Made by a program: the position numbers and the translations under genes. Source: Cyanophora paradoxa CCMP329 (lineage: Eukaryota; Plantae; Glaucophyta). From it: DNA of 64,000 nucleotides. Numbering within the stretch: position 1 is the stretch's first letter; each line of letters opens with the position of its first letter. Location: the NCBI GenBank assembly GCA_004431415.1, contig QPMI01000436.1, positions 434,001-498,000 of the forward strand, read 5' to 3'. The notes beneath the pieces were generated by a model, which saw only the letters and a list, made by a program, of their open reading frames with translations, did no database searches and was not told where the DNA came from. This document shows positions 23,500 through 54,229 of this stretch, in pieces.

Positions 23500-26431
23500 C
23501 GTTCCGAGCGCGTTCCGTGACCAAGGAGCCGCTTAGGAGCGGCTTTGGGAGCCGCTTGGGAGGTCCCAAGAGCAGCTCATTGCGAGCCGGCAACGTTCAC
23601 CGAACTTGTCGCCAAAGCTGAACTCTGGTGAGCCCTAGCTCCAGGACCGTGCGTGTCGGAGACCCAACTGACTGCCATTCACTACCGCAGCCCTCTGTGC
23701 GCCGTCCTCTGTACTCTCTGTTCGAGCTCCCGCGCACGCGGCCAACGCCGCGCGCTCGCCGTGCCGCGCTCATGGTCCTCGAGCCGCGCCCCAACGCCGC
23801 GTCGCGGCGGGCGCCACGCCGCGCTGCCTCGACGCCGTCCACGATCGGAACCTCGCCGCGCCCTCGCGGGCTCCTCGCGCGCCCGGCCGTGGTCTCGTAA
23901 GTCGCCGCCCGCGTCCTTCAGCTTCGGAGGGCTTTGGATGCGGCCGCGCCGCCCTGCACGCGCACGAGGGGCCCGCGGGCGCGCGTCGGTGCGCCGGGCG
24001 CCCGCCGCGCCGCGCCCGCGCCGCGTGGCGCCGCCGCCTGACGCCCGGCCGCCAGATTCGATCCCCGCCCCGTCGCCCGTACACTGCGGCGCCGCCCTCC
24101 GAACCTCCGCACCGGCCGGCGGTGCGTCTGCAGTCCGCCCCGCCCGCCCCCCGACCGCCCTCGCCGCCACTAACGTCCTGCCCGACCAGTTTCCAAGTGA
24201 TCGGCTGCCGCGGGGGCCCGCCGCCCGCGCATTCGGGCTCTCCGCGCCATCCCCTTTCCAACGGTGTCCGGCACGCCGCGGGGCGCGCCGCCCTCCGGCC
24301 CGCCGCCGGCGCCGCCGGTCTTAGCGGAGGAGTCCTTCGGCGCCCGCGGGTCCGGGTACGACTCGCTCGACTTTCTCCGCGCCAAAGGTTCGAATTCGAT
24401 CCGCGCCCCGGCCTCCCCCTGGAGCTCCCTCTCCCGAGCGAGCGAGCAAGCGCGCGCGCAGGTCGGCCTGACGTCGCGCGAGCTGTGCGCGATCGTGCGG
24501 CGCGTGCGGCCGTCCTGAGCCTCGACGCCTCCGCCCGCATCGAGCCGCTCATCGTCCTCCTGCTCGCCAACGACGTACCCCTCGCCTCCATCCGCTCCGG
24601 CTTCCGGTGGTGCGCGTTCCCTCCCCCTTCCCCTTTCCTCCCCCGCGCCGCGCCGCCTCACGGCCCGCGCCCCGCAGCTTCCCGCGTGTCCTGTTCTGCG
24701 ACGCCGCTACGATCGCCTCGCGCATCGCGTGGCTCCGGTCCCGCGGCGTCGACCTGCCCAAGGCTCGCCCGGCCCAGCCCGCCCGCCCCGCCCCGCCCTG
24801 CGGCCCAGCTGAGCCGAACGGGCGCAGCTGTGGCGGCAGTGCACGCAGACGCTGACGCTGAGCGAGGAGAACCTCGAGCGCAAGTGGGCGGCCCTCTCCC
24901 GCGAGATCGGCGCGGACGGCGCCAGGCGCGGCCCCGCGGCTCTCCCCCGCTTCCCCCCCTGCCCCTCTCAATCTAAGCGGCGGGCGTGCAGGCGCGTCTT
25001 CGAGGAGACGATTGCGCCGACCCTCTCCGTCGAGAACCTCCTCGGCAAGCTCGACGAGGTGCGCTCAGATCAGGTCGCTCAGATCGCTCAGATCGCTCAG
25101 ATCAGATCTGATCTGACCTTACTCGGGGGCAGGTGCAGGGGGCACTGGGGGTACCGCGGCGGGAGCTGGCGGCGCTGGCGGCGCGCATGCCGGGCCTCCT
25201 CGAGGTGCGCACCGCTCAGATGAGATCCGATCTGATCCGATCCGATCTGATCTGATCTGACTCCTTCCTCCCCCACAGGCGGACGTGCCGGCGCGCGCTG
25301 GGGCCTCGTTTGAGTACCGGGGGAGCCTTGGCCTCTCCCGCGCCGAGGTACCCGAGATCTAGACACCCCGCCCTCCGCCGCCCTATCGACTCCCTGCCCT
25401 GACGCGCGCCGCGCCGTCCTCCCCGCAGGCGGCCGCCGTGCTCCGGGCCGTGCCCCGCTTCCTCGTCTCCGACATCGACGCCTGTTACAGCCCCGCCGTG
25501 CGGCTCCGCCCCCCCGCGCTGCGCCTCCTCGTAAAGCGGTACCCCCAGGTCTCGTTTCTGCTCTCGACGGGCTTCTCGCCTTAGGACGTGGCACTGCTGA
25601 TCCGCCGACGGCCTACGCTCCACCGCTTCTCCGTCACCAAGTACTACTCCCCCCTGGTCCGCCCGGCGGCCCCCCGCGCTCTCCCCCCGCCCCTCCCCCT
25701 CGCCTCTGACCTGTACCCCCCCGCCCCGGCTTAGGCGATGTTCCTGTCGCAGCAGGGGATCCACGGCCCGGCCCTCGTCCGCGTCCTCCGCCTCGCCCCC
25801 GAGCTCCTCGGTCCGTCTGGCTATCTCTATCTAGATCTTACGAGCCACGAGCCATCACTCCCTCTGCTGTTCTCGCTCCCGCTCGGCCGACGTTGACGCG
25901 CCGCCCGCGCGCAGGCCACTCCATCGAGAGCCTCAGGCGCGAACGCAGCCTGCCCCTCCCCCTCCCCCCCCCGCCCCCCCCCCCCCTGCCCACCCCCTCC
26001 GCCCCCCGTCCTGAACCCGTACCCCCCGCAGGCCCAAGTTCGAGTTCCTGTACGCCCAGCACTACTCCGCCCGCGTCGTCATCTCGTACCCCACCGCCCT
26101 CAAGTGCTCCCTCGGTGCCCTGTACCCCGCCCGCCGCCCCGGCTCCCCCCCACCCCCCCGTCCTTCGTTTGCAGAGCGGCGCATCCGCCCGCGGCTGCTG
26201 TTCCTCGCGGGGCGCGGCCTGCGGGCGCCCCTCTGCCGCGCCCTCACCCTCCGGTGCCCCAACCCCTTCCTCTTCCTCCCCCTCGTTTCCTCACGTGTAC
26301 CCCCGGGCCCGGGGGGGTACAGCGACGAGCGGTTCGCGGGGGAGGTGGCGCGGTGCCGGCCCAAGGAGTGGGCCGCCTTCCTCGGGCGCCATGCGGGCGG
26401 GCCGGACGGGACCCGCGGCCAGGACGGCTGA
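23500..26431 (+). pseudogene. mTERF copy 2 with upstream flank (pseudogene)
   Basis: Same exon/intron structure as copy 1, with a 1-nt deletion at about 24505 (cgtgcggcc vs cgtgccggcc) and an in-frame TAG at 25582-25584. Confidence 0.8.
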
Positions 26432-27158
26432 GCGAGCGTACCCCGGGCGCCCTGGGTACAGCGAGGCCGTGACCACGTGCGGCCCGCGCCGCGCTTATAA
26501 TTACCGGCGGGGCCCGATGCTGGGCTATAGCTAGCGCCATCGCTTTCCCATGCATGCCTACGTAATTTGCCAGTTGCCCCAAGTACAATTGCAAAGCGCC
26601 GGCGCCGGCCACTGCGCCGGCAGCGGCCGCAGGGAGCAACATGAATTCTTCATGCAAATCGATAAGGAAGTGGGTTAATTTCGGGCCGGGATCCGAGTTT
26701 TCTTGGAGTCTCAGGCCGGGCCGCTGGCCCTGGCGAGCCTCGCGATCGAGTACTGGCGACGACGCACGTGCATGCGCATGCCGCAGCTGCAGTGCGCAAT
26801 CGCATTCATGATCTTGGGCGTGCCACAGTGTACATAATTATAAGTGCGGCTGCAGTGTATGTCGTAGTATAGCCTACATTTAGCTAGCAGTCTCGAGCTC
26901 GCAATCGATAAAAGATAAGAATTCGAAATGTAAAGCTCGATGCCAAAACGTAAACGTTGTGATATAAATGTAAAGCTCGGTGCCAATTGCAATATTAATA
27001 AGGAAAAGTAAAACGAGGACACTGCACGTGACATCGATAATCAAGGCAAGACTTCCGAATCCTAAATCCAAGACTGAAGGACGGAGGAGTAATCGCCACA
27101 TGTTAAACCGCTAACGTTAACGGAGCCCGTAGGAGTGCCCGCACCAGGCCCGTGCCTC

Positions 27159-30100
27159 TCACGATGGACACTCAAGCATGAAAGGGCAGCAAAAGCCAAC
27201 AGTACGGCGGGTAGATGCCAGCGCCCGTGCCGGCGCCTCGCCCTCGAGAACGCCCCTCTCTGCGGACGCCGTGCTGCCCCGAGCCGCGCCCGCCCGCCCG
27301 CCCACCCCGCTCAAGCGGAGCACGCAGCCGCCGGTGCCCCGAAGAGGAGCGGCCGAAGCGGCCGCCCCGGTGCCCTCACGCGGAGCGGCCGAAGAGGCCG
27401 AAGAGTCCTCCGGCCCCGGCGCCGCCCCCAGCTGCGCCCGCCGCCCGTGAGTGAAGGGCGCCCGGCCCGGCGGGGGCGACTCGAGCTCGGGGCGGGGCGG
27501 GGCCGAACCGGCGTCGGGCCTGACGGCCGTGAGGATGGCTTCCAGCTGCGCCTCCAGCTTGGCATGCTGCGCCTTCATTTCGGCATGCTGCCCCTTCATC
27601 TCGGCCTGCAGTGCCTCTAGCTTGGCCTGCTGCTCCTTATGCTTCAATGTGAGCTGCGGCGGCGGCGTCAGAGCAGAGCCGGCGCCCAGGCCCCGCAGAG
27701 AGGCGGCGGACCTCCTTCTTCAGTTGCTCGATGTGGGCGCGGGGCGGCGAGTCATCGCGGAGCTCGAGGGGCCCCGTGTAGATCGGGTCCGGCGCCTCCC
27801 GCTCCTCGTCGTACCGCAGGGCGCTGAGCTTGGGCTTCCCGCTCGCCTCGGTCCCTTCCGACTCCGGATCCTCCTCGGTCGCCTCACTCCGAGGGCGAGC
27901 CGCTTCTTGGTTCGCCCTCGCCCCTGCAGCTGCTGCCTCCTCGCCGCTGGGCTGTTTGCCATCGGTTCCCTTGCCTCCCGCCTCGCAATTGGCGGCGGCA
28001 TCCCCGCCCTTGGGCTGGAGGCGGTGCTCCTCGATGGCGTCCCCCCAGGCCTTGCGGATGCCGTGCTCGAAGCGATACGAGTTGTGCTTGGCCCTCAACT
28101 CGTCCGCACTCAGCTCTGCCTCCGGGACGGATCCTCCAATCGCCCCAGCCGCCGGGCGGGACCCAATGCGCGCAACGAGCCGCCCCAGGTCCGCGGCCGT
28201 AGCAAGGAGCAGCAGTAGGGGCAGGAACAGGACGCCCGACGCGAGGTTGACTGCAGCCGTCGCGAGGCGCGGGGAGAAAGAGAGAAGAAACCATAGGATG
28301 TTGAAGGGCGCCACCACCTGCTGCTCTCGGCGGTGGTACCGCAGAACCATCTGAGCGTCCGATGAGTCCTATGCAAATGAACTCGTGATCGGGTGGACAC
28401 GGAAGCAGGCAGCACCTTCGTGCGGCCATACGCGTACACAACTTGTGCTTTGTCGAAAGTCGCAGTGATGGTAGAGCTGCAAAAGAGGAATGCATGAGAT
28501 TACCAGACGTAGACCGAGAAGTCTAGGCCGGCGCCTGGCCAGGCGTGCCTGAAAAGACCGGTGAGGACGTTGAGCAGGAGGACAACAGTCAGGATCTGGT
28601 AAATGGAGAGGAGCGCGGCGCCTGGCGAGAATGAAAATGAGCCACTACGAAGATCGACGGAATTAACGACCTCAACGCGAACCGATGAAGGGGACGCGGG
28701 TGCTGAACTCATTCGAGTCGCTCTCGCCCAGCACAGCAAAATACAGAATGCCACTGCAAAGCCCGAGTTGAAGGGGCACCAATAAATTCATCAGAGGGTC
28801 GAGACTCACGCCATCTCATGAAGGCTCAAAGGATTCTCAGCGCCGTCCGCACTTGAAGCCGCACGGATGTTAAGCGACCAGGCCCAGAGGCCCACGCAGA
28901 AGCTGCCAAAGATGACTGCAAGAACGAGCAGCACCGTGAAGACGTCCTTTGCCATCTGCGACGTAAACAAATTGAGACGCGTTTGGGGCACGGATATCGA
29001 TCCAGGACGGCAGTCGCCTATCACCTGCCCGAGCACAGTGAGCATTGGACCAAAGATCTCGCTAATGTAGCCGAATTCGAGGATGCGAAGCCCAGCCAAA
29101 ATGAACACTGCAAGATGAGGGTGAACAAAATTCGATAGCGACAGGTTTCAGCTCACAGCAACAAACCGACTGCAAGGACCGGGATGGGAAGAGACCAGAA
29201 GATGCCCTGGAGATGAAACGTTTCGGCACATATCGCACACGCCGAGGCCGCGAGCGTTCCGTGCAGGCAACCAGGTCAGGTGTAAGTGCGAAAATGGTGT
29301 AGCTCACAGCCAAAGTGCTGGAAAGCGGGCAGAAGGATATGGCCAGGATGAACCAGTCGATCCAATTGAAGACATCGGAAAAGTACGAAGAGGTGCCCCC
29401 GGATCGACGCTCGTCCAAGAACTGTAGGCGCTCTAAATTAAATTTCATTCAAAGCAGCCTCAGAGTGCAGGAGAGCACCTGTGAGAACTCGTGGATCAGG
29501 AGGCCGAGGGCCTGCAGCGCAAGGGGCACCAAGAGCCACCCACCGCCTCGGCAAACCGCTGCTCGGAAAAACCGAGGTCGCTTTCGCAGCAAGCAAATGA
29601 CCACTTTCAACCACTCACCGGTCCCAAGCAGGATGAGAAACAACACGTAGGCGCCGAGGTCTATCGCAAATCGTCCCCGCCACCCCCCGAGCACGCTTGC
29701 AGGTGAATCGAACCACAGCTGCTCAGTCAACGCTGCAGGCTTTGGCTCCTGTTCGGGCCTCTCCATCCTCGTCATTTGGTGATCCTTGCACGCATTCCAG
29801 GCAGGCAAGCCATCCTTCACACACGCCGAGCAATAGTTGGAGCAATAGTTGCGATCCTCGCATTGCTTGCACTTGAACCGTGGGCCGACGATCGGCTCCT
29901 GCGGGGGTCGATCAGCATCGGAGGCTGGGGATTGACAGGAGTCTGCGGACCGCTCTACATCCGTAGCATTCCACTCCCGTCCAGACCGCAGGCTCGCGAT
30001 CGGCATCGAGTGACAAGAGGGCAGAAGCCATCGACGCCGGAGCGACCGACGACAGCGAGAGCGCTGCCCCGCTTTCCCATATGCGGTTCACGTAGCGCTG

Positions 30101-33100
30101 CACAAAGTGGTGTGCCTGTGGAGGTGTGAGCACAGGCAGAAGCTGCCACCAGAAGCGACGCAAAGCAAAGCAATGCGCACCACGACGTCGTGAAAGCCGA
30201 GGTCGAGGGCCATGTCGACGGCGGACGGCACAATGCCCGCGCGGCCCTCGAGAGCCTGGTGACGAAACTTTCAGCAAATGCAGCACATGGATAAGCGAGC
30301 ACTAAGCAATCGTACATGTACATCGATACATGGATACACGAGAAAGCTCACATTCACTGCAGCGATGACTGGTTCTCCCGAGTTAGTTACTGCAACGATC
30401 ATGCTATTTGACCGCTTGCGTGCCCAAGCTCTGATCTGCTTGCATGTCCAAAAAATTCTATCGAGCGACCCAAAAGGTAATAAACTCATTAGACATTCCG
30501 CACCAGTTCATGTACAAGCCACGAGTCCAGCGCATCAAACGGCGTTCGTCCCAGAAATGCCTTCAACTGATCATCGTTCTTGCCTCCATCACGTACGCTT
30601 CTAGCCCACGGCAAACTTTTCACTGCTGCAATCCATGATGCTGAGAACGGGAGATAGCGTGAGCATCATTGTGAAACTCCTCAGGATAGTTACCGCCAAT
30701 AAAAGTCGCTACCCTCGTAGTGCCCTTCAGGGCGCCTGCGCTGGATGCGGTCGCCCAACGCCATCTCCATCCTGTCGAGGAGCTCGACAGCGATGCCCCG
30801 TAAGTCCTTCATGCGGTCGGCAAGGAGCGCCTGCTGGTCCGCGCTTGCGCTTGCCTGCATGCGACGTCATCCTCCAGCAGAAGGAACTTGGATGATGGTA
30901 TGCACCTGGAAAAGCTGTGCTATGCGGAGGACAACGTTGAGCTTTCCAGCAGGGAAGCGGTTCACCAAGGTTCTAACGTCGAGCTCGAGGCCCATTGCAG
31001 CAACGAATTCCGTGCAAACCCGCGACATGCTGTCTTTCGAGAACTTGACGGCCTCACAGTCCATGAATAGCTTCAGGAGTGGTTTGCTCTTCGATCTCAA
31101 TGCTTGGTCGAGAGGCGAGAGGCCATCCTTGTCGCAAACTGCCCACAAACTGGCGCCAGCTGACTTGCAGTTGAGAAGGATTCTGCAAGAAGTTGAGAAA
31201 GGCTCCCGAGGCTGCGGATTTCAGAACCCCAAAGAGTCTCCTCGCACCGGGCAAACGACTCCTCCCCCATTTCAATAACAATATGCAACGCAGTGCGCCC
31301 TGTCGTGTCTTGGACGTTGACGTCGGCTCCATGTTCCAGCAGCAATCTGCTCATGCGTGGTCACTTTTGAATACGTCCAAAACAGTCCTCGCCATCGCCT
31401 AGGGCCTCGCTTCTAAATATCTCCTCTCGTCTCTTATAAGCACCTCAAAGCATAAAATATCAAACATAAGCAGACGTCTCTTTTAAAGCGGACTCTCACT
31501 CATTAAAGCGCCCCCAGCGGCTCGGCCCCGCACCGGGCGACCCCCTCATGCCCCAAATCGACCACGCAGTGCAGCACGGTCCCAGCCACACGCACCGGGC
31601 GGTCCCCTCGTGCCCTTCATTGGCTGCACGATGCAGCGCAGTCCGCCCGTCCTTGTCCCGAGCGTTGACGTCGGCGCCGCGCTCGAGCAGCAGCCTGCGG
31701 GCGCGCGGTCGCTCTCTGTCGGAGGGGCAGCGCCAGCGCGCGCTCGGGCCCGTTCACGGCAGCGGGGAGGGGGGGAGGAGATGGCTTTAGCTTAGCTCGA
31801 AAGAGGGAGGGGGAGCGAGGGGCGGGCGCGGGGGAGGGGAGGCGACTGGAGCTGAAGGTCCGGGGCTTTTGGGGGGCGCAGGGGTGGGGTCGAGGGGGGT
31901 GGGGGGGGAGAGGGGGGGAGAAGGGGGGAGGGGAGGACGGCGCGGGAGGCGGAGCCTCTCGTCTTGAGCGTCAGAGCGCCCGCATTGTGGCCCTCTGCTC
32001 CGGGCAGCGTTTCGTCTATACAGGCGCTCCCCTCTTGAAGCCGTCGCAGCTCGCTTTTGCGACTCTAGGTGCCCCAAGCGGCCCCGCCCCACGCACCGGG
32101 CGGTCCCCTCTTGTCCTTCATCCGCAGCGCGATGCAGCGGGGTCGATCCACCATTGTCTTGGGCCTTGACGTCGGCGCCGCGCTCCAGCAGCAGCCTGCG
32201 GGCAGGCGGTCACTCCCTATCGGAGGGACAGCGCCATCCCGCGCTCGGATTCGTTTACAGCGGCTTCAGGATGGGAGAGGGGGGAGAACGGGAGGAGGAC
32301 GGGGGACAGGGGACGGGGGGGTACGGGTTGAGGTGGGAGGTGGGGGGGGGGGAGAGGCGGGTGCAAGGATCGGAAGGGGAGGGGACAGGAGAGGGGCGAA
32401 GGGGAGCATAAGGTCCGGAGCTTTCAAGTTTGGGAGGGAGGGGGGGGGGGGGGGGGGCAGGGGCGGGTTGAAGGGATTGAAGGTGGGAGGAGTAGAGGGA
32501 GATGGACCCTCTCTTGGGACTCAGAGCGCTCTCCATCGTGGCCCTCTGCCAGGCTGCTCCGGGCAGCGTTTCGTCTATAGTGGCGCTCCCCTCTTGAAGC
32601 CGTGCAGCTGGCTACTGGGACGCTCCTTGTCCCAAGCAGCCCGGCCCCGCGCACCGGGCGGTCCCCTCGTGCCCCCATTCGGCCGCGTATTGCAGCGCAG
32701 TCCATCCTTTCTCGTCCCGAGCGTTGACGTCGGCGCCGCGCTCGAGCAGCAGCCTGCGGGCGCGCGGTCGCTCTCTGTCGGAGGGGCAGCGCCAGCGCGC
32801 GCTCGGGCCCGTTCACGGCAGCGGGGAGGGGGGGAGGAGATGGCTTTAGCTTAGCTCGAAAGAGGGAGGGGGAGCGAGGGACGGGCGCGGGGGAGGGGAG
32901 GCGACTGGAGCTGAAGGTCCGGGGCTTTTGGGGGGTGCAGGGGTGGGGTCGAGGGGGGTGCAGGGGGGGAGGGGGGGGGAGAAGGGGGGAGGGGAGGACG
33001 GCGCGGGAGGAGGAGCCTCTCGTCTTGAGCCTCAGATCGCCCGCATTGTGGCCCTCTGCTCCGGGCAGCGTTTCGTCTATACAGGCGCTCCCCTCTTGAA

Positions 33101-36100
33101 GCCGTCGCAGCTCGCTTTTACGACTCTAGGCGCCTCAAGCGGCCCGGCCCCGCGCACCGGGCGGTCCCCTCGTGCCCTTCAAAGGCTGCGCGATGCAGCG
33201 GGGTCCATCCCTCCTCGTCCCGAGCGTTGACGTCGGCGCCGCGCTCCAGCAGCAGCCTGCGGGCGCGCGGTCGCTCTCTGTCGGAGGGGCAGCGCCAGCG
33301 CGCGCTCGGGCCCGTTCACGGCAGCGGGGAGGGGGGGAGGAGATGGCTTTAGCTTAGCTCGAAAGAGGGAGGGGGAGCGAGGGGCGGGCGCGGGGGAGGG
33401 GAGGCGACTGGAGCTGAAGGTCCGGGGCTTTTGGGGGGCGCAGGGGTGGGGTCGAGGGGGGTGGGGGGGGAGAGGGGGGGAGAAGGGGGGAGGGGAGGAC
33501 GGCGCGGGAGGCGGGGCCTCTCGTCTTGAGCGTCAGAGCGCCCGCATTGTGGCCCTCTGCTCCGGGCAGCGTTTCGTCTATACAGGCGCTCCCCTCTTGA
33601 AGCCGTCGCAGCTCGCTTTGAGGACTCTAGACGCCCCAAGCGGCCCGGCCCCGCGCACCGAGCGGTCCCCTCCTGCCCTAATGTGGCAGCGTAGTGCAGC
33701 GCGGTCCATCCCTCCTTGTTCCGAGCGTTGATCATGACGTCGGCGCCGCGCTCGAGCAGCAGCCTGCGGGCGCGCGGTCGCTCTCTGTCGGAGGGGCAGC
33801 GCCAGCGCGCGCTCGGGCCCGTTCACGGCAGCGGGGAGGGGGGGAGGAGATGGCTTTAGCTTAGCTCGAAAGAGGGAGGGGGAGCGAGGGGCGGGCGCGG
33901 GGGAGGGGAGGCGACTGGAGCTGAAGGTCCGGGGCTTTTGGGGGGCGCAGGGGTGGGGTCGAGGGTGGTGCAGGGGGGGAGGGGGGGGGAGAAGGGGGGA
34001 GGGGAGGACGGCGCGGGAGGCGGGGCCTCTCGTCTTGAGCGTCAGAGCGCCCGCATTGTGGCCCTCTGCTCCGGGCAGCGTTTCGTCTATACAGGCGCTC
34101 CCCTCTTGAAGCCGTCGCAGCTCGCTTTTACGACTCTAGGCGCCTCAAGCGGCCCGGCCCCGCGCACCGGGCGGTCCCCTGGTGCCCTCCACTGGCGGCG
34201 GAGAGCAGCGCAGTCCATCCTTTCTCGTCCCGAGCGTTGACGTCGGCGCCGCGCTCGAGCAGCAGCCTGCGGGCGCACGGTCGATCTCTGTCGGAGGGGC
34301 AGGGCCATCACGCGCTCGGGCCCGTTCACGGCAGCGGGGAGGGGGAGATGGGGAGATGGGCTTTAGAAAGAAAGAAACGATGGCTTTAGCTTAGCTCGAA
34401 AGAGGGAGGGGGAGCGAGGGACGGGCGCGGGGAAGGGGAGGCGACTGGAGCTGAAGGTCCGGGGCTTTTGGGGGGTGCAGGGGTGGGCTGGACGGGGGTG
34501 CAGGGGGGGAGGGGGGGGGAGAAGGGGGGAGGGGAGGACGGATCGGGAGGCGGGGCCTCTCGTCTTGAGCGTCAGAGCGCCCGCATTGTGGCCCTCTGCT
34601 CCGGGCAGCGTTTCGTCTATACAGGCGCTCCCCTCTTGAAGCCGTCGCAGCTCGCTTTTACGACTGTAGGTGCCCCAAGCGGCCCCGCCCCACGCACCGG
34701 GCGGTCCCCTCGTGTCCGCCATAGGCGGCCCAATGCAGCGCGGTCCATCCTTTCTCGTCCCGAGCGTTGACGTCGGCGCCGCGCTCCAGCAGCAGCCTGC
34801 GGGCAAGCGGTCAATCTCCATCGGAGGGGCAGGGCCATCACGCGCTCGGATTCGTTTACAACGGCTTCAGGATGGGAGAGGGGGGAGAAGAGGAGGAGGA
34901 CGGGGGACAGGTACGGGTTGAGGTGGGAGGTGGGGGGGGGGGGGGGAGAGAGAGGCGGGTGCAAGGATCGGAAGGGGAGGGGACAGGAGAGGGGCGAAGG
35001 GGAGCATAAGGTCCGGAGCTTTGGGGGGGGGGGGGAGGGGGGGGGGGGGGGGGCGGGGCAGGGGCGGGTTGAAGGGGATTGAAGGTGGGATGAGTAGAGG
35101 GAGGTGGACCCTCTCTTGGGACTCAGAGCGCTCTCCATCGTGGCCCTCTGCCAGGCTGCTCCGGGCAGCGTTTCGTCTATAGTGGCGCTCCCCTCTTGAA
35201 GCCGTTGCAGCTGGCTACTGGGACGCTCCTTGTCCCAAGCAGCCCGGCCCCGCGCACCGGGCGGTCCCCTCGTGCCCCCATTCGGCCGCGTATTGCAGCG
35301 CAGTCCGCCCGTCCTTGTCCCGAGCGTTGACGTCGGCGCCGCGCTCCAGCAGCAGCCTGCGGGCGCACGGTCGATCTCTGTCGGAGGGGCAGCGCCAGCG
35401 CGCGCTCGGGCCCGTTCACGGCAGCGGGGAGGGGGAGATGGGGAGATGGGCTTTAGAAAGAAAGAAACGATGGCTTTAGCTTAGCTCGAAAGAGGGAGGG
35501 GGAGCGAGGGACGGGCGCGGGGAAGGGGAGGCGACTGGAGCTGAAGGTCCGGGGCTTTTGGGGGGTGCAGGGGTGGGGTCGAGGGTGGTGGGGGGGGAGA
35601 GGGGGGGAGAAGGGGGGAGGGGAGGACGGCGGGGGAGGAGGAGCCTCTTTTCTTGAGCACTCAGAGCGCCTCGATCATGACCCTCTGCGCCCGACAGCGT
35701 TTCGTCTAAAGAGCCACTCCCCTCTCGAAGCTGTCGCAGCTCGCTCTTAGGACTCTAGGCGCCCCAAGCGGCCCGGCCCCGCGCACCGGGCGGTCCCCTC
35801 GTGCCCTCTCCAAGCGGCATGGTGCAGCGCGGTAGATCCGTCCTTGTTTCGAGCGCTGACGTCGGCGCCGCGCTCCAGCAGCAGCCTGCGGGCGCGCGGT
35901 CACTCTCTATCGGAGGGGCAGCGCCATCATGCGCTCGGGCCCGTTTACGACAGCGGGGAGGGGAGTGGGGGGGAGGGGAGGTGAGCTTTAACAAGAAGAA
36001 AACTATGGCTTTAGCTTTAACGATGGCTTTGAGAAACGCGGGAGGGAGGGGATGGGAGGGATGGGCGTGGGGCGCGGGGAAGGGGGGAGAGAGGAGAGGG

Positions 36101-38650
36101 GCCAAGGGGAGCAGAAGGTCCAGGGCTTTTGGAGGGTGCTAGGCTGGGCTGGAGGGGGGTGGGGGGGACAGGAAGGACGGCGTGGGACGCGGAGCCTTTT
36201 CTCTGGAGCCTCAGAGCGCCCCCATTGTGGCTCTGTCAGATTCTGTTTCGTACAGCGTTTCTTATATATAAAGGAGCCCCCCTCTTGCAGCCGTTGCAGC
36301 TCGCTTTCAAGGCACCCCGGGGGGAGGACGGGGGAGGACGGGGACAGGGACGGGGGGGTACGGGTTGAGGTGGAGGTGGGGGGGGGGGAGAGGCGGGTGC
36401 AAGGATCGGAAGGGGAGGGACAGGAGAGGGGCGAAGGGGAGCATAAGGTCCGGAGCTTTGGGGGGGGGGGGGGGGGGGGGGCGGGGCAGGGGCGGGTTGA
36501 AGGGGATTGAAGGTGGGAGGAGTAGAGGGAGGTGGACCCTCTCTTGGGACTCAGAGCGCTCTCCATCGTGGCCCTCTGCCAGGCTGCTCCGGGCAGCGTT
36601 TCGTCTACAGTGGCGCTCCCCTCTTGAAGCCGTTGCAGCTCGCTTGTAGGACTCGAGGCGCCTCAAGCGGCCCGGCCCCACGCACCGGGCGGTACCCTCG
36701 TGCCCCCATTCGGCCGCGTAACGCAGCGCAGTCCGCCCGTCCTCGTCCCGAGCGTTGACGTCGGCGCCGCGCTCCAGCAGCAGCCTGCGGGCGCGCGGTC
36801 GCTCTCTGTCGGAGGGGCAGCGCCAGCGCGCGCTCGGGCCCGTTCACGGCAGCGGGGAGGGGGGGAGGAGATGGCTTTAGCTTAGCTCGAAAGAGGGAGG
36901 GGGAGCGAGGGGCGGGCGCGGGGAAGGGGAGGCGAGAGGGGGGGAAGGGGAAGGATGGCGCGGAAGGCGAAGCCTCATTTCGTGAGTCTCAGAGCGCCCC
37001 CATCGTGGCCATCTGTATCAGACAGCACTTCGTCTATAGAGGCGCTCCCCTCGTTAAGCCGTTGCAGCTCGCTTTCAGGACTCTAGGCGCCCCAAGCGGC
37101 CCGGCCCCGCGCACCGGGCGATCCCCTCGCGCCCGTTATTGGCGGCGAGGTGCAGCGCGGTCCATCCCTCCTTGTTTTGGGCGTTGACGTCGGCGCCGCG
37201 CTCCAGCAGCAGCCTGCGGTCGCAAGATCGATCTCCATCGGAGGGGCAGCGCCATCACGCGCTCGGGCTCGGTTACGACAGTGGGGAAGAGAGGAAGGAG
37301 GGGCGATGAGCTTCTATTCAGGAAACAAGAAAGCGATGGCTTTAGCTTGGCTCGAAAGAGGGAGGGGAAGGGAGGGACGGGCGCGGGGGAGGGGAGACGA
37401 GAGGGGCCAAGGGGAGCATACGGTGCGGGGCTTTTGGAGGTGCAGGGGTGGGGTCGAGGGGCCGGGGGTGTGGGGGAGGGGAAGGACGGCGCGGGAGGCG
37501 GAGCCTCTTCTCCTGAGCCTCAGAGCGCCCCAATCGTGGCCCTCTCAGAGTCTGTTCCGGACAGAATTTCGGCTATAGAAAATTTTTAAACGCTCAGCGG
37601 CTCCCCTCTCGAAGCCGTTGCAGCTTTTAGGACTCTAGGCGCCCCAAGCGGCCCATCCCCGCGCACTGGGTGGTCCCCTCGTGTCCACGATAGGCGGCCC
37701 ATTGCAGCGCGGTCCATCCCCTGTCGTCCCGAGCGTTGACGTCGGCGCCGCGCTCCAGCAGCAGCCTGCGGGCGCACGGTCAATCTCCATCGGAGGGGCA
37801 GCGCCAGCGCGCGCTCGGGCGACAGTGCGGAGGGAAGGAGTGGGGGAGGGGGAGGCGCGGGGGGGGGGGGGGGGCAAATGACGCGTGCGGGGAAGGGGGG
37901 GGGTAAAGGGAGAGGTGACAAGGGAGCAGAAGGTCCGGGGCTTTTGGGGGGTGAAGGGGTGGGCTGGAGGGGATTGGGGGGGAGGGGAAGGACAGCGCGG
38001 GAAGCGGAGCCTCTTTTCGTGAGCCTCAGAGCGCCCCCATCGTGCCCCTCTGTTCCGGGCAGCGTTTCTTTATAGAGACGCTCCCCTCTTAAAGCCGTCG
38101 CAGCTTGCTTTGAGGATTCTAGGCGCCCCCAGCGACCCAGCCCCGCGCACCGGGTGGTCCCCTCGCGCCCTCCAAAGGCGGCCTGGAGCAGCGCGGTAAA
38201 TCCCCTCTCGTCCCGAGCGTTGACGTAGGCGCCGCGCTCCAGCAGCAGCCTGCGGGCGCGAGGTCAGTTTCTATCTGAGGAGCAGCATCGCTTCTCGATC
38301 AAATAACTTCTTGGGGGGGGGGGGGGGGGGGGTCCGGGGGGCGACGGAAGGGGGGGGGGAGGGGGGGGGAGGAAGGAGGGCCGGCGGGGACGGGGGGCGC
38401 ATAGCAATGCCTCCCGCACGATCCTTCGCCCCGTGCTCACCTGGCGATGTCCTCGTGCCCCCTCTGACAGGCGAGCATAAGGGCGGTGAGCTCTCTCCCA
38501 GAATCACTGTCGTGGTCCACGGCATCGACGGGGGCACCGGCGTCCAGCTCCCTCCTGCGGGCGCCCTCGAGCGCGTCTGGACGTAGCGGGACAGCGGCCG
38601 CACCGGACCGCAGCCAGGTTGCCCGCGTAGACCGCCCAGAAGAGCTCCAT
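27159..38650 (-). CDS. TRP-type cation channel with N-terminal ankyrin-repeat array and ZZ-type zinc finger (start may lie further upstream)
   Basis: Domain order: ankyrin array; helical linker ([12 protein letters not shown]); ZZ finger ([32 protein letters not shown]); TM segments ([16 protein letters not shown]; [14 protein letters not shown]; [28 protein letters not shown]); pore helix [12 protein letters not shown]; S6 [17 protein letters not shown]; TRP-box-like YAYGRTKMVLRYH...VAPFNIL; C-terminal coiled coil. Confidence 0.85.
31596..38249 (-). repeat. Tandem array of 13 exon+intron units (~500-560 bp), each exon one ankyrin repeat
   Basis: Exons at 38151-38249, 37667-37765, 37115-37213, 36686-36784, 35787-35885, 35258-35356, 34698-34796, 34168-34266, 33659-33763 (105 nt), 33158-33256, 32655-32753, 32097-32195 and 31596-31694. 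All are bounded CGCAG|G ... CG(or CA)|GTGCG. N-cap exon 38441-38554, C-cap exon 31248-31346. Confidence 0.95.
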
Positions 38651-39399
38651 GCCGGGCTCGGGCTCGGGCCCGAGGCCGGACGCGGGGCCCGCGGCGCCCG
38701 CGCCCGACTCGGCTGCCGCCCCGCGGGGCGACCGCCGCCCCCGAGGCCGGAGCCGCGGCGGCTGCGGCCGCCGGCGCGGCGCTGGCCGCGGGCGAGGCGG
38801 CGCCCGCGCCGGCCGCGGCTGCAGCGGCGGAGCTGTCGCGGTCGGGGCCGCCGCGCGGCAGAAGCGGCGCGCGGAGGCCGGAGTTGACAGAGGCGTCGGG
38901 CTCGAGGCCGGCCGCGTCCTCGAGGTCCACTGGGCCCGCACCGGCGCCTGGGGGCGCGCGCGACGATTTGAATGCGACTGGTCATCCGACGCTCGCGGGA
39001 CGGCCGCGCGCGGCGGATCGGCTCACCGTCGACAGCGGAGAGCGGCACGAAGGTCACGGCGCCCCTGAGGGACCTCCGAGCTGCGCGCCGGGCATGTGTT
39101 CGTCGACCGCGAACTTGACCGCAGGCCGCGGGCGGGCCGCTACAAGCGGAGAGCGCACCGCTCTCGTCAGTGGTCGGGTGCCAGCGATCAGAGACGGAAT
39201 CGGCGACCGAAGGCGGGCCGCCGGGGCCCGGCCGCCGCGCCAGGCCGCGCATGTCAGTTTAAATCTGCCAGGCAGCGGTTACTGGAACGATCGGCAGCGA
39301 TCGATCGAAGCGATCTCAGAGGCGCGGGGGCGCACGCTAGAGACAGGAACGGGGGCGGGCTCGGGGAGCTGAGCTGGACCCCAGCGTGCGGTACCCCCA

Positions 39400-42300
39400 T
39401 ATACGTACCCCCGGCCCGTGACCAATGAGCCACTTGGGAGCCACTTAGGAGGTCCCAAGAGCAGCTCATTGCAAGCTGGCAACGTTCACCGAACTAGTCG
39501 TCAAAGCTGAACTCTGGTGAGCCCTTGCTCCAGGACCGTCCGTGTCGGAGCCCCCGCTTACTGCCATTCACTACCGCAGCCCTCTTTCCGCCGTCCTCTG
39601 TACTCTCTGTACGAGCTCCCGCGCCCGTGGCCAGCGCCGCGCGCTCGCCGTGCCGCGCATCATGATCATCGAGCCGTTCCTCGAGCCGCGCCCCAGCGCC
39701 GCGCCGTCCTCGAGCCGCGCCCCAGCGCCGCGCCGCTGCGGGCGCCACGCCGCGCTGCCTCGGCGCTGCCTCGACGCCGTCCATGATCAGAACCTCGCCG
39801 CGCCCTCGCAGGGTCTTTGCGCGCCCGGCCGTGGTCTCGTGGGTCGCCGCCCGCGTCCTCCAGCTTCGGAGGGCTTTGGATGCGGTCGCGCCGCCCCCGC
39901 GCGCGCAGGAAGGGCCCGCGGGCGCGCATCGGTGCGCCGGGCGCCCGCCGCGCCGCCCCCGCGCCGCCCGCCGCCGCCTGACGCCCGGCCGCCAGATTCG
40001 ATCCCCGCACCGTCGCCCGTACACTGCGGCGCCGCCCTCTGAGCCTCCGCACCGGCCGCCGGTGCGTTTGCAGTCCGCCCCGCCCGCCCCCGACCGCCCC
40101 CGCCGGGCCGCAGCCACTTACGTCCTGCCCGACCAGTTTCCAAGTAATCGGCTGTACCCTTCCGCCGCGGGGACCCGCCACCCGCGCATCCGGCCTCTCC
40201 GTTCCGTCCCCTTTCCAACGGTGTGCTGCACGCCGCGGGGTGCGCCCAGGCGTCCTGAACCCCCCCCCTTCTCCCCCCCCCCCCCCCCTCCCCCCCGACA
40301 CGGGAAGCCCTCAGCGGCGGCCCTCGAGGCGGGCGCCGGCGCCTGGAGGCAAAGGAGGGCGGCGCGGCCGGGCGAGCGCCGCGGCGCCCCCGCCGAGGCC
40401 CCGGAGCCCCGCGCGAGGCGAGCCGGCGGCCCGCGAGCGCGTGCGGCGCGCTTCGGCTCCTTTGAGGCGGTGCGGGGCGCAGCGCGCCGCCCTCCGGCCC
40501 GCCGCCGGCGCCGCGCGTCTTCGCGGAGGAGCCCTCCGGCGCCCGCGAGTCCGGGTACGACTCGCTCGACTTCCCCGCGCCAAGGTTCGAATTCGATCCG
40601 CGCCCCGGCCTCCCCTGGAGCTCCCTCTCCCGAGCCCGAGCGAGCTAGCGAGCGCGTGCAGGTCGGCCTGACGTCGCACGAGCTGTACGCGATCGTGCGG
40701 CGCGTGCGGCCGTCCTGAGCCTCAACGCATCCGCCCGCATCGAGCCGCTCATCGTCCTCCTGCTCGCAACGACGTACCCCTTGCCTCCATCCGCTCCGGC
40801 TTCCGGCGGTGCGAGCTCCCTCCCCCCTCGACCCCCCTCCCCCGCGCCGCGCCGCCTCACGGCCCGCGCCCCGCAGCTTCCCGCGTGTCCTCTTCTGCGA
40901 CGCCGCTACGATCGCCTCGCGCATCGCGTGGCTCCGCTCCCGCGGCGTCGACCCGCCCAAGGCTCGCCGGGCCGGCCCGGCCCTCCCGCCCCGCGGCCCA
41001 GCTCAGCCGAACGGGCGCGCAGCTGTGGCGGCAGTGCCCGCAGACGCTGACGCTGAGCGAGGAGAACCTCGAGCGCAAGTGGGCGGCCCTCTCCCGCGAG
41101 ATCGGCGTGGATGGCGCCAGGCGCAGCCCTCCCGCCCTAACCCCTCTTCCCGGCCCCTCTCAATCTAAGCGGCGGGCGCGCAGGCGCGTCTTCGAGGAGA
41201 CGATCGCGCCGACCCTCTCCGTCGAGAACCTCCTCGGCAAGCTCGACGAGGTGCGCTCAGATCCGATCGGACGGCGCAGATCTGATCTGACCTCTCTCGG
41301 GGGCAGGTGCAGGGGGCGCTGGGGGTACCGCGGCGGGAGCTGGCGGCGCTGGCGGCGCGCATGCCGGGCCTCCTCGAGGTGCGCGCTGCTCAGATCAGAT
41401 CCAACCCGATCTTATCTGACCTGATCCGATCTAACAACTTCCACCCCGCAGGCAGACGTGCCGGCGCGCGCCGGGGCCTCGTTCGAGTACCTGGGGAGCC
41501 TCGGCCTCTCCCGCGCCGAGGTGAGCATGCGACCTAGCAAACTAGCGACCTAGCGATCGCCCGGCCCCGCCTACCCGGCCCTACCAGAGCCCCCGCCTAC
41601 CGCGCACGCCCCCCGGGCCACCCTTCCCCCTCCCCCCCCCCGCCCCTCTTACCGTCGGACCAGGCGCCCCTCTAGACGCCTGACGCGCGCCCCGCCGTCC
41701 CTCCCGCAGGCGGCCGCCGTGCTCCGGGCCGTGCCCCGCCTCCTCGTCTCCGACACCGACGCCTGCTACAGCCCCGCCGTGCGCCCCGGCGCCCCCGCGC
41801 CCCTGCACTCGCCGTGCGCTACGTTGTAATGTATAAGAGTTCCGCCTCTCCCCTCTCCCCGCCTCTCCCCTCTCCCCCCCAACCCCCTAAAAGCGGTACC
41901 CCCCGGGTCTCGTTCCTGCTCTCGACGGGCTTCTCGCCGTCGGACGTGGCGCTGCTAATCCGCCGACGGCCCACGCTCCACCGCTTCTCCGTCACCAAGA
42001 ACTACTCCCCCCTGGTCCGCCCCGCCCCCGCCCCCGCCCGCCGCCTGAAGGAGGGGGCAAGACCGGACACCGCCGCGCTCTCCCCCCGCTGACCCCCTTG
42101 CTTCTACCCTTCCCCCCCTCCCCCCCCGCCCCGGCTCAGGTGATGTTCCTGTGGCGGCAGGGGATCCACGGCCCCGCCCTCGTCCGCGTCCTCGCCTCGC
42201 CCCCGAGCTCCCGAGGTCCGCCCAGCGCGCCCCCGACCCGATCGAAAAAACCGCCCTCGAGCTCCGGCTATAAATAGGCCTATAAAAACCGCCCTCGTAC

Positions 42301-42822
42301 GGCTACGCTATGAAGGCCCGGACGGATCCCATCCAGATTCAAGCGGATTTGGCCAATCTATCTTACGACACCGCGCCCATCTCAAGCCCCATCTATAAAT
42401 AGCTATCTAAACGCCCGCCCCTAGCCAAGAGCCGTCGCTCTCTCTCTCTCTCTCTCTCTGCTGCCCTCGCTCTCGCTCGGCCGACGCTGACGCTTCGCCT
42501 GCGCGCAGGCCACTCCATCGAAAGCGCAAACGCTGCCCCCCCCCCCCTCCTCCCCCCCCCCCCCCCCCGCCCGCCCCCCCCCCCCCCCCCGCCCTGAACC
42601 CTTACCCGCGCAGGCCCAAGTTTGAGTTCCTGTACGCCCAGCACTACTCCGCCCGCGACGTCATCTCGTACCCCACCGCCCTCAAGTGCTCCCTCGGTGC
42701 CCTGTACCCCGCCTGCCGCCCCCCGCCCCCGCCCGCCCACCCGCCCTCGCTTTGTTCGCAGAGCGGCGCATCCGCCCGCGGCTGCTGTTCCTCGCGGGGC
42801 GTGGCCTGCGCGCGCCCCTCTG
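39400..42822 (+). pseudogene. mTERF copy 3 with upstream flank (frameshifted, 3' end replaced)
   Basis: Shares the 1-nt deletion of copy 2 (about 40705) and has a further deletion at about 40766. Homology ends at ...gcccctctg|tcggttgaatg (about 42822). Confidence 0.8.
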
Positions 42823-43533
42823 TCGGTTGAATGTGGCCGAGAAAAGCGACAACAGAGCAGAGGGGATCTGGCAAGCTGTATTGAGGAAGCTATTGAAAGT
42901 CATAGTACGTATACTAGTAAGTCTATAGAAAGTCAAATATATTGAAAGTCTGTGTTGTTAGCTTGGCTCAAGTTTTTTATGTGAAAAAAGTACACAGAGC
43001 GCGAAGCTCTGAAGAGTAAAGCATCCGAGTAAATTTAAAACGGCGCAGACTGAAGCAGAGAAACGAGGTGAACGAAAAAGCACGATGCTGGAGGCCGTCC
43101 ATCACTGCTGACACTGGACCACAAGCTGCAGCTGAGCTGCAGCTACAGGGGCGGCTTCCGTTGCCAGAAGCGCTAGCCAACTGCGCATTGTCGCCTTCAG
43201 CTGCGGGAGCGGCTCCCGTTGTCGGAGGCCGACCGCGCGTTGTCGGAGGCCGACCACGCATTGTCGCCGGCGGCGGGGGGCGGATTGTCGGCGGCCGATG
43301 TCGGGGGGGCGTCGGCGGAGGGCGCGGGGGCAGCGGCAGAGGGCGGGGGGGCAGCGGCCGAGGGCGCGGGGGTGGCGCCGAGGTTCGAAGGGCCGGCGGC
43401 GGAGGGCGCCGGGGCGCCGGCATTGAGGCTCAGTGTGGGCGGGAACATGATGACCGTATCTGCTGAAGTACCGGTGCGCGCCCCCCGTGGCGTGGTGACG
43501 TTGCTCGAAGTTCCGCCACTCGCTTCGGAATTG

Positions 43534-44442
43534 CTAGCAGTCTGGGCTGAAAATGGTTTTCGCGGTATAACGGCCAACCGAAACGCAAAGCGCACCGAGC
43601 CGGACTTCACTCCGGACGGTCCTGCGACGGCTTGATCTGGTACCGGTAAGAAACAAGTACGCGGTTATATGAAGGAATTCGATGGCACCCGCAAGATACC
43701 GCGAGAGATGCAATGTCCGGTCTACCTGCTGCTCCGCCTTGACCGCGCGTTCCTTCATGTTCGCCTTCTCCTTCAGGGCGTGATCCGCCCGCTGCTCTGC
43801 GAGAGCCGCCTGCTGCTCCGCCTTCACCGCACGCTCCTTCATCTCCTCCTTTTCCTTCTGGGCGTGATCCGCCTGCTGCTCCGCCTTCACCGCGCGCTCC
43901 TTCATCTCCTCCTTTTCCTTCTGGGAGTGATCCGCCTGCTGCTCTGCCTTCACCGCGCGCTGCTTCATCTCCTCCTTCTCCTTCTGCGCGTGATCCGCGT
44001 GCTGCTTCGCTAGAGCCGCCTGCTGCTCTGCGAGAGCCGCCCGCTGCTCCGCGAGAGCCGCCCGCTGGAGGATGTAGTGGACGAATACAGCGGCCAGAAC
44101 CCCGAAGGCCGCCATTAGGCTTGCAGGGTCAGCCTGCGCGGCGTCTGAGAGGGAAAACCGCTGCAACTGGATATCTGAAATGCAGTGCACCGTGTTAGCG
44201 AACGGCGCGGCGACAAGATTCTCTCGCTGGGCGAGTCCGATCAGCGCCACCGCGACCGCCACGGCAACCATCACTGCCAGCAGTAGATTCATGATTACCT
44301 GCACGGATAATCGAATGGCATTTCGGAAAACTCGCGTTTGCGAAAGACACGCACCGAGTGAAGGGCCATATTCCGGAGGACATGTACAGGGGACTGAGCT
44401 TTGGGCAACGAACAAAGGGGCTGAGCTTTGGGCGACGGACAA
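43534..44442 (-). CDS. Hypothetical membrane-anchored coiled-coil repeat protein, copy A (boundaries approximate)
   Basis: Hydrophobic N-terminus (MNLLLAVMVAVAVAVALIGLA; LMAAFGVLAAVFVHYIL) followed by heptad-multiple repeats AEQQADHAQKEKEEMKQRAVK (4 units). Confidence 0.55.
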   Translation of the reverse strand: MSVAQSSAPLFVAQSSVPCTCPPEYGPSLGACLSQTRVFRNAIRLSVQVIMNLLLAVMVAVAVAVALIGLAQRENLVAAPFANTVHCISDIQLQRFSLSDAAQADPASLMAAFGVLAAVFVHYILQRAALAEQRAALAEQQAALAKQHADHAQKEKEEMKQRAVKAEQQADHSQKEKEEMKERAVKAEQQADHAQKEKEEMKERAVKAEQQAALAEQRADHALKEKANMKERAVKAEQQVDRTLHLSRYLAGAIEFLHITAYLFLTGTRSSRRRTVRSEVRLGALCVSVGRYTAKTIFSPDC

Positions 44443-46020
44443 AGAGGATGGTCATGAGCTGGGGTTGCGGCTAGCGCTCTGCACCAGGGGGTAGGCAGTT
44501 CCCAGGAACGAGGAAGCGTACCCGTCGAAAGTCCTGCATGTGCATGCGTACCCTTTTGCCGTACATCTGCGCATGCCGGCGCCGCGCCTGCCGCGCCTCA
44601 TACGTATACACACCATAGCCTCCGAGAGCTCCAGGCAGCCCGCAGCGGCCCCGCCGCACTGTTTGGCAGCGCCTCCGTATACGTATACGTATACGACTCG
44701 CAACTGCCCCCTCCCCCTCCGGACTCCCCGCCGCCCCCGCCCCCAGCGGACCCTCCGCCACCCCGGCCCCCTCCCCTCGCCCGCCCGACCGGCCCTCCCC
44801 CGTCCCCCGGCCCCGTCTCCCCCCCCCTTCCCCCCCAGCCCCCTCCCCCCCACACCCCCCAGCCTCCTCCCCCTCCCCGCAGCCCAGCCCCGCTACCCCG
44901 CCGCCTCACGCGCCGCGAGCGTGAGCTGGCCGCCCTCCGTGACTCGGCCGGCTTCACCTCCGCCCGCAACAATCTTCTTGCACGTGGAGACCGCGGAGCC
45001 CGACGTGCAGGTCCGGCTGTCCCAGCCCCTGATCCACAGGACCGCCCCCCCCCGGACCCCCCGCCTCGGTGAACCTCTCTGACCCCCCCACACCGCCGTC
45101 ACCCGTCGAACCGCAAGACCGGCCCCCGCCCCGCCAGCCCGCGCCCCCGCCGCCGGGCCCCCCACCACCGCCGGCACCGCCCTCGGTCCCCGCACCACCG
45201 CCCCCATTCGAGTTTTCCGCCCGCGCGCGCCAGCTCCACCCCGAGGCACTCCCGCCCCCAGACCGATGTCCCCTCTGCCTACACCCCTGGGCCGTCACCG
45301 CCGCCTCCACCGAGCCCCGTACCCCCTTCTCTGCCCCCAAGGTACCACCCCCTGCTCCACCGCGGCGACCTCATCCAGTCCCTCCTCATCTTCGGCCTCT
45401 CCCCGCTGGGCTACAGACCCTGAGCCCAAAGTGTGCACTCCCTGCCCGCGCGCGCCGGGCTGACGCCACGCTCGCGCTTGAGAGGCCCACTCCTGGAGGA
45501 GAGCAGGCCCCTCGGGCGTGGCCTGCCTGCCCGCGCCAGGTCCGGTCCCGCCCGCGCAGGTGCAGGCTGCCACGCCGCTGGCAGCCTGCAGGGCGGGACC
45601 CGCCGCCGGATGGGGGCCCCAACCCCTCCCCGGGGGCCCGCGCCCGGCGGCGCTCGCACCGCAGAGGCGGTGCGCAATAAATCCTCCGGGGCCCTGCCCA
45701 ATAAACTCTCCGGCCCCAGCTCCCCACCCCCAACCCCACCCCCCCAATGGCCGCGCTCGCGCGGCCGCTGGGGGAGGCCCCACCGAGGGCCGCAAGAGTG
45801 GCCTTAGGGGGTAGGGCTCGCAGTAGGGAGATTCCCTCGGGGTTAGTCTAGCTGGAGACCCAATAGGGGGGAGGTAAGCTAGACTTGTCGTGTGTTTGTA
45901 GGCCTAGGCCTAGGGTAGGCAGATAGCATTAGCTGTTTGTCAACTTGGGGCACCAGTCCCCTAATACACTAGGGATTACTGAAAAAAAAAAAACCTATAT
46001 AGCTAGCGCTAGCCACGTGC

Positions 46021-51960: not shown

Positions 51961-52154
51961 TCCGAATTCGAAGTTGAATTCGAAGTCGAATTCGCGATCG
52001 GCGACGATGGCCATGGGGGGGAGGACTGGGACGGGGGGGACGAAGCTGGGGTACCGCCTGCAGCTGGCGGAGATCGAGATCCGCTCGAGCTTTGGGAGGG
52101 CCGCGCCGAGGGCGCCCTCCGCGCCGGGGGGCCGGGCGGGGGCGGGGGCGGGGG

Positions 52155-52201
<47 letters not shown>

Positions 52202-53900: not shown

Positions 53901-54229
53901 AGCGCAAGTGGCCTGCTGCGATGCCGCACTCATCTGGCTCATCTGCGGCGACTCTGGCGGCGCTCTCCGCTCTTCATAGCTAATGTCCCTAGTTCATAGC
54001 TGCGCTCGCCGCTTGTCTTGCATACATCTAGCTAAAAGCGAGGTCGGAGGTCTTCCCGCTGGGGTACGAGTTTTGGCTGGGGTAGCCCACGCAGCCCGCC
54101 TCTGCCTTGTGGCGCCCGCGGGCGAGCGGAGCGTGCAGCAGCGATCTCTCTAGTGCTTTGTGCATCTCGTACGCGCGCAGATCGGCACCGAGAGTCGGCC
54201 GTGAGCTCGCACCGATCGGCACCGATCGG

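Follow-up and report, generated by a model that had tools for sequence, protein, structure and literature searches.

A hypervariable ankyrin cassette array on a predicted TRPC-like channel gene of Cyanophora paradoxa: a candidate sensor of foreign proteins

How might a single-celled alga recognise its enemies, and could an ion channel do the recognising? Almost nothing is known of enemy recognition in the unicellular algae that stand at the base of the plant lineage, and in this article I will discuss a gene of the glaucophyte Cyanophora paradoxa CCMP329 that raises the question. It lies on the minus strand of a 64-kb window (positions 434,001 to 498,000 of contig QPMI01000436.1, assembly GCA_004431415.1; coordinates below are those of the window), where 13 near-identical ankyrin exons precede the exons of a predicted TRP channel. 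The answer towards which I lean is an expressed TRPC-like channel whose ankyrin domain evolves like a variable receptor and which is predicted to sense foreign proteins, the array channel being a testable candidate for sensor and executor alike. This answer draws on cassettes that recombine and vary along one binding face, on codon models of those variable sites and on spliced RNA that joins the array to the channel.

Cassettes and their variable face

Six-frame scanning and splice-site mapping place 13 ankyrin cassette exons on the minus strand between 31,596 and 38,249, twelve of 99 nucleotides (nt) and one of 105, all 13 of them phase 2-2 and bounded by AG/GT. Their order and variable cores are those that an earlier note on this DNA had read from the letters alone; a fuzzy search of both strands of the window turned up no complete cassette beyond these. 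Introns between cassettes measure 330-461 nt with the exception of intron 4 (800 nt), and one cassette exon with its intron forms a unit of about 500 bp. The same note had set the cassettes between distinct N-cap and C-cap exons, and these do flank the array; however, both (114 and 99 nt) are likewise phase 2-2, and the 'C-cap' exon (31346-31248) turns out to be a 14th ankyrin repeat (Pfam Ank) of lower GC content than the cassettes, directly followed by an exon with a degenerate ankyrin repeat. The array comprises the following features, in the order in which they are read.

38441..38554, minus strand: N-cap ankyrin exon, 114 nt, phase 2-2 (splice and phase mapping, Pfam scan)
38151..38249, minus strand: cassette e1, 99 nt (scan and splice mapping)
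37667..37765, minus strand: cassette e2 (scan and splice mapping)
37115..37213, minus strand: cassette e3 (scan and splice mapping)
36686..36784, minus strand: cassette e4 (scan; DNA contig of run X1)
35886..36685, minus strand: intron 4, 800 nt, two fused intron units with the scar of a deleted cassette near 36310 (blastn)
35787..35885, minus strand: cassette e5 (scan; RNA contig in run X19)
35258..35356, minus strand: cassette e6 (scan)
34698..34796, minus strand: cassette e7 (scan; DNA contig of run X1)
34168..34266, minus strand: cassette e8 (scan; RNA contig in X19)
33659..33763, minus strand: cassette e9, 105 nt, with an in-frame 6-nt insertion (scan; DNA contig of run X1)
33158..33256, minus strand: cassette e10 (scan; DNA contig of run X1)
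32655..32753, minus strand: cassette e11, 5' half of e8, 3' half of e6 and e6-type downstream intron (RNA contigs in X17 and X18)
32097..32195, minus strand: cassette e12 (scan; RNA contig in X19)
31596..31694, minus strand: cassette e13, e6-like 5' half and e10-like 3' half (spliced to the next exon in three RNA runs)
31534..31583, minus strand: half-cassette remnant in the intron, donor intact (skipped in RNA, joint 31346-31596)
31248..31346, minus strand: 14th ankyrin exon ('C-cap'), 99 nt, phase 2-2 (RNA contig, Pfam)

Columns 14, 15, 17, 21, 22, 25 and 26 of the cassettes hold 4-8 different residues each, and most other columns hold one or two. In the register given by alignment to DARPins, these variable columns (called x sites here) are ankyrin positions 2, 3, 5, 9, 10, 13 and 14, all on the concave face. 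Classical DARPins are randomised at positions 2, 3, 5, 13, 14 and 33, a set that includes five of the seven variable positions, and the DARPin columns chosen a priori are enriched for variation (permutation p 7.6e-4), in agreement with the claim of the earlier note that hypervariability is confined to a DARPin-type binding face. The engineered ANK-N5C library was randomised at positions 2, 3, 5, 10, 13 and 33, which together make a single surface of beta-turn and helix 1 residues (PMC4308713). The cassettes share with these libraries their register and variation at positions 2, 3, 5, 10 and 13 (as in ANK-N5C) and 14 (as in DARPins), but they are natural, position 33 is nearly fixed (R/Q) and position 9 (the His of TPLH) also varies; they offer a natural sample of the ankyrin positions varied by selection, including one that engineers have kept fixed. 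The commonest of the 91 x residues are E, W, R, K and H, with W, Y, R, E and H enriched and no Cys among them; the 43 distinct x codons include no stop, and the Ala, Gly and Thr codons lying between the variable codons show silent changes only.

Recombination, homogenisation and selection

The introns carry the first clue as to how such diversity arises, with introns 7-10 and 12 differing from one another by 1-5% and introns 6 and 11 by 4%; neighbouring introns are 1-5% different while their exons differ by 10-19%, and even the units with the closest flanks (3-5% different) differ at 14-19 exon nt and 7-10 residues. Cassette e11 is identical to e8 over nt 1-55 and to e6 from nt 62 to 99 and on through 120 bases of the intron that follows (0 differences in either part), an exact chimera which implies a crossover in the conserved middle of the cassette, and e13 is a similar mosaic of e6 and e10. 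Furthermore, 56 of 136 informative site pairs fail the four-gamete test, with fewer failures among near sites (p 0.049), intron 4 consists of two intron units fused without their exon (one cassette having been deleted), and a half-cassette with its donor lies after cassette 13. Unequal crossover or conversion is therefore the source of new, lost and fused cassettes and of uniform introns and framework, and old, distinct cores persist. The exon shuffling of the brown alga Ectocarpus, to which the earlier note had likened the array, remains a good likeness; however, the crossovers here fall inside exons, which whole-exon shuffling does not explain. A diversity-generating retroelement was considered and rejected, the changes not being A-specific (G>A 11, G>T 8, A>G 8, G>C 7, C>T 7); no template copy of such an element and no inverted cassette was found in the window, where the one half-cassette is on the same strand.

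Selection against homogenisation would best explain why distinct cores persist, and codon models of my own, fitted to these 13 short recombining sequences, address this. M8 improves on M7 (2dL 38.8) with an omega of about 5 at exactly the seven variable sites; I reject this naive value as inflated, since the synonymous rate is uneven along the exon and is in the core 4-5 times what it is at the ends (likelihood ratio test, p<0.001); diversity at core fourfold sites is 0.39 vs 0.17-0.19 in introns. Measured against the core-specific synonymous rate, omega at the x sites is 2.4-2.7 (p ~0.001); it falls to 2.2 (p 0.01) when each half of the exon has its own tree, and is then 2.7-2.8 for the a-priori set (p 0.002). 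The expectation of omega above 1 at the x positions thus holds at 2.2-2.8 after correction, about half the naive estimate once the raised core synonymous rate is modelled, and positive selection at these sites is moderately supported.

The main rival to selection against homogenisation is a local mutation hot spot or conversion shadow, that is, neutral concerted evolution under relaxed constraint, in which conversion would be anchored in the introns and exon ends, the middle of the cassette would escape it or mutate faster, and the surface would drift. I regard this as rather unlikely, and several observations speak for it: the synonymous rate is raised in the core, the GC content at third codon positions is 0.59-0.71 in the core vs 0.92 outside it, nonsynonymous and synonymous differences are about equal at the x sites, and the same positions are variable in all ankyrin families. 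However, such drift does not readily account for an omega that stays at 2.2-2.8 when set against the core's own synonymous rate, for the Ala, Gly and Thr codons that change only silently amid variable ones, or for x residues enriched in W, Y, R, E and H.

The channel and its transcript

Judged from sequence, the gene encodes a channel of TRPC-like type, in which about 15 ankyrin repeats and then a ZZ-like finger come before S1, the TRPC placement resting on best matches (TRPC first) and not on a tree. The exon following the array is 100% identical to a 154-residue fragment in EukProt (Cyanophora paradoxa tig00020629_g12426.t1, P0001), which means that the public annotation splits the gene. Downstream of the array, 16 of 16 exons are stop-free and collinear, exon by exon, with Cyanophora paralogs, the nearest being P0004 (ankyrin, ZZ finger, truncated model); P0007 is a complete ankyrin-Ion_trans paralog. 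The paralogs carry Pfam Ion_trans above cut-off, and the collinear mapping of the array gene's exons onto them yields six transmembrane segments and an S5-S6 pore loop, single short transmembrane exons having no Pfam match of their own. Outside the array, the gene was read as follows.

39027..39252, minus strand: probable first coding exon, ATG at 39252, family motif VTFVP, splice sites inferred
38604..38977, minus strand: exon 2, Ala/Gly-rich linker and first N-cap helix pair, 3' part matching P0004 116-148
29951..31182, minus strand: five exons with degenerate ankyrin, helical linker, pre-S1 and the first Cys pair of the ZZ-like finger (RNA contigs, paralog match)
29619..29898, minus strand: ZZ-like zinc finger and S1 (match to P0004, E 7e-14)
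28416..29558, minus strand: eight exons with S2-S6, pore helix and TRP-box equivalent (exon-by-exon match to P0007 and other paralogs, stop-free)
27711..28368, minus strand: C-terminal exon, post-TRP-box PFNIL motif (paralog match)
near 27652-27159, minus strand: final predicted coiled-coil exon

The product of the first exon aligns to the N-terminus of P0004 (E 3.6e-4 in a set of 7 proteins). In exon 2, a frame discontinuity of 1 nt near 38,735 falls in a G/C run between two coding-like segments. A mistake in the assembly, a tiny intron or a genuine lesion may lie behind it, and the next in-frame Met is at 38,650.

A profile of the paralogs' membrane part matches TRPC4/5 from S1 to beyond S6 (E 8e-24), and also TRP-gamma, Chlamydomonas TRP1 (crTRP1, E 5e-12), TRPM and yeast Yvc1. 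Against TRPC4 the family aligns ungapped from S6 through the TRP box, a stretch matched by the array gene's exon 28476-28416, and the TRP-box equivalent diverges from the EWKFAR consensus; a GC-AG intron inferred between S6 and the TRP helix (28549-28476) restores the exact spacing to TRPC and paralogs. An Atlas feature search was consistent with the TRP assignment. The ZZ finger of P0004 scores above the Pfam ZZ cut-off, and exon 29619-29898 of the array gene, taken alone, has no Pfam match. The array gene was examined exon by exon and structural prediction refers to the paralog channel, for which AlphaFold gives a pLDDT of 54.7 (below 50 in the transmembrane part) and Foldseek returns TRPC matches with TM-scores of ~0.16, lending weak support. 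Pfam scans of the paralogs found no NACHT or NB-ARC domain and every downstream exon maps to channel paralogs; being without a nucleotide-binding domain, the array channel is not an NLR.

Homolog searches, which were word-based, length-limited and blind to distant, longer or shorter kin, recovered about eight homologous proteins, all from Cyanophora, and the cassette pattern was not found in metagenome contigs. A rough motif count gives the paralogs ~1-11 repeats. Mean repeat identity is 75% in the array gene vs 22-45% in the paralogs, so the homogenised array is special to this gene copy. In P0040 and P0041, two ankyrin repeat types alternate (ADP- and APV-type) and one pair is 88% identical; these are independent recent duplications within the family. 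The P0004 model reads through an apparent intron at the same Ala-Arg boundary, which suggests an exon layout shared with the array gene. An N-terminal motif D-R-x-P/T-L-L in P0004, P0007, P0040, P0042 and P0043 resembles an acidic dileucine signal for vacuole or lysosome, and the array gene has L-R-A-P-L-L at ~38880-38850, without the acidic residue; subcellular location may differ among paralogs. Contigs of another locus, from RNA and DNA, share 20-nt words with the cassette start (31677-31696, 32178-32197 and 34248-34268), and at least one further ankyrin gene carries this framework sequence.

Animal TRP ankyrin domains serve as springs or chemosensors, and it is fair to ask whether a diversifying binding or gating module might here receive a non-immune input, be it a host partner, a selfish element, a chemical cue (TRPA1-like) or the stretch of a length-tuned, NompC-like spring. 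Those animal roles and the varying repeat number of the paralogs fit such an input, which I nevertheless consider improbable: a spring requires length and not a hypervariable concave face, there is no Cys among the x residues, and a single host partner usually imposes purifying selection.

Expression bears out the fusion to a TRP-like channel that the earlier note had proposed, alongside the collinearity with paralogs. Sampled words of the channel part occur without exception in 16 DNA runs and to 46% in four RNA-like runs, as expected of spliced RNA. A 2,598-nt contig found in three of the RNA-like runs joins cassette 13 to 31346-31248, 31182-30906 and 30854 onward, and the rest of it fits the exon model to the C-terminus within ~10 nt. 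Cassettes 5, 8, 11 and 12 are also present as RNA contigs, and cassettes missing from such contigs carry no meaning. Could splicing then be the main source of diversity? The earlier note had proposed to test for combinatorial exon skipping, and the symmetric phase 2-2 of 13/13 cassettes, whose splice sites are near-identical, means that skipping would stay in frame. However, no exon-skipping joint was seen among RNA contigs, which do drop rare variants and collapse bubbles; cassette 13 continues unbroken into the next exon in 3/3 RNA runs, the start that follows cassette 11 is of the CTG type, which suits e12 and not e13, and a shared junction node at ~2x channel depth is compatible with e5-e6 and e6-e7, both in-order joins. 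In-order splicing is the probable rule, and splice combinatorics as the chief source is very unlikely.

The cassette units themselves are real, since DNA contigs of run X1 (2012) cover pieces of cassettes 4, 7, 9, 10 and 13 with flanking intron at 0-2 differences, and one (35872-36342) spans the intron-4 scar with 0 differences; cassette order and number are those of the assembly, the contigs being shorter than the array. An assembly artefact, or an array left in a dead gene, can be set aside as next to negligible: poly-G-rich repeats, an order not spanned by contigs, the break near 38735 and the split annotation would fit it, but cassette-specific DNA contigs, spliced RNA, exons without a single stop and 43 stop-free x codons do not. 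Depth in X1 is 10-18 for the cassette-specific DNA contigs (33148-36769) vs 41 for a single-copy channel contig, a deficit that is likely due to GC or poly-G dropout and may reflect haplotype or cell-to-cell variation of the array.

A candidate sensor among known systems

How would such a channel work? Between units, unequal crossover or gene conversion adds cassettes, deletes them and fuses them, and crossovers in the conserved T-A-L middle pair the beta-turn half of one cassette with the helix half of another; introns and framework are homogenised and the concave-face codons stay diverse at omega above 1, with selection probably retaining differing binding surfaces against homogenisation. 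Each subunit would present a binding face of ~15 repeats, and a channel that forms a tetramer, as other TRPs do, would have ~60. This face is predicted to bind variable foreign cytosolic proteins of a virus, bacterium or parasite, and binding would open the pore to give a Ca2+ or cation signal for defence or cell death, with sensor and executor in one chain, much as in a fungal ANK NLR in which a channel replaces the nucleotide switch. A more ambitious version is possible, and I offer it tentatively: that Cyanophora possesses ligand-gated immune TRP channels in which a recombining cassette library recognises foreign proteins and gates Ca2+ directly without an NLR switch, the library being part of a genome-wide set of exon-per-repeat sensors and changing so quickly that it differs from one isolate or cell line to another.

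Several points weigh against a selected receptor. Diversity at x-codon positions 1 and 2 (0.49, 0.44) barely exceeds that at core fourfold third positions (0.39), and Nei-Gojobori pN/pS is 0.98 at x sites, a counting that I set aside for codon models as saturated and path-averaged; the omega above 1 depends on how the models correct for these data, in which synonymous sites are few and both recombination and multi-nucleotide changes occur. The sampled channel words are present in all 16 DNA runs, which probably come from one strain, the 1-nt frame break sits upstream of the array, and the closest solved relatives of the channel (TRPC) are not immune receptors.

Fungal ANK NLRs with conserved repeats in Podospora have five positively selected sites, mostly on the same face (PMC4986451), and share with the Cyanophora gene near-identical repeats, concerted evolution, change in repeat number and positively selected sites on the concave side, in the beta-hairpin and inner helix; the NLR-type combination of high repeat conservation with selected concave sites is found here too (75% mean identity, omega 2.2-5). 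Unlike them, the Cyanophora gene lacks NACHT/NB-ARC, sets its array N-terminal to a six-transmembrane TRP channel and has one repeat per exon. The ROCO-LRR and NB-ARC-TPR genes of Ectocarpus, exon-shuffled candidate receptors (PMC3341825, PMC11378527), share one repeat per symmetric exon, a recombination hot spot, diversifying selection and, if the half-cassette is counted, an inactivated intronic repeat; in contrast to these, the glaucophyte gene uses ankyrin and not LRR or TPR, a channel and not a GTPase or NB-ARC, and shows no inverted intronic cassettes in the window and no alternative splicing among the contigs. In plants, the ankyrin-transmembrane immune channels Lr14a and ACD6 (PMC7878491; 10.1101/2024.12.10.627212; 10.1101/2021.01.25.428077) have ~12 ankyrin repeats fused to a Ca2+-permeable defence channel. 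Their membrane domain is not the TRPC-like S1-S6 and TRP box of Cyanophora, and the accessible text on them reports no homogenised cassette array. Among TRP channels, TRPC4/5 and crTRP1 (PDB 7b05, 6pw4) share S1-S6, pore helix and TRP-box equivalent, and TRPA1 and NompC (TRPA, TRPN) the long N-terminal ankyrin domain; unlike TRPC with its four repeats, the Cyanophora gene has ~15, recently homogenised and hypervariable, with a ZZ-like finger before S1, in a family found in Cyanophora only.

The best reading of these likenesses is that the repeat-diversification mode of fungal and brown-algal NLR-type sensors has here been put to use on a cation channel. The earlier note knew of no equivalent, and a literature search, with most subscription journals outside it, found neither this channel family described nor a TRP channel bearing such an array; however, the DARPin-like pattern is known from the fungal ANK NLRs and the union of ankyrin with a Ca2+ channel from Lr14a and ACD6, so each element is known and the combination appears to be new. 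If the favoured reading is true, TRP channels would join NLR and ROCO switches as carriers of repeat-shuffling receptors, and Lr14a and ACD6, the ankyrin Ca2+ channels of plants, would seem to have arisen convergently with the Cyanophora gene. Channel output (current, Ca2+) is easily measured and the cassettes can be swapped in ordinary assays.

The surroundings of the gene add smaller observations. GC content is ~58% in the channel-coding part (27700-31400) vs 66-75% in the array and most of the window. A truncated duplicate of the gene's 3' end and of DNA beyond it (21854-22471 and 19865-21765, 75% identical to 27166-27819 and 25398-27211) has no channel exons upstream of it. Dispersed repeats of 0.5-2 kb and 75-92% identity, probably transposon remnants, flank the gene at 18450-26500, 39400-44500 and 54200-61800, and a stop-free frame of 2,078 codons lies at 46803-53036 on the minus strand.

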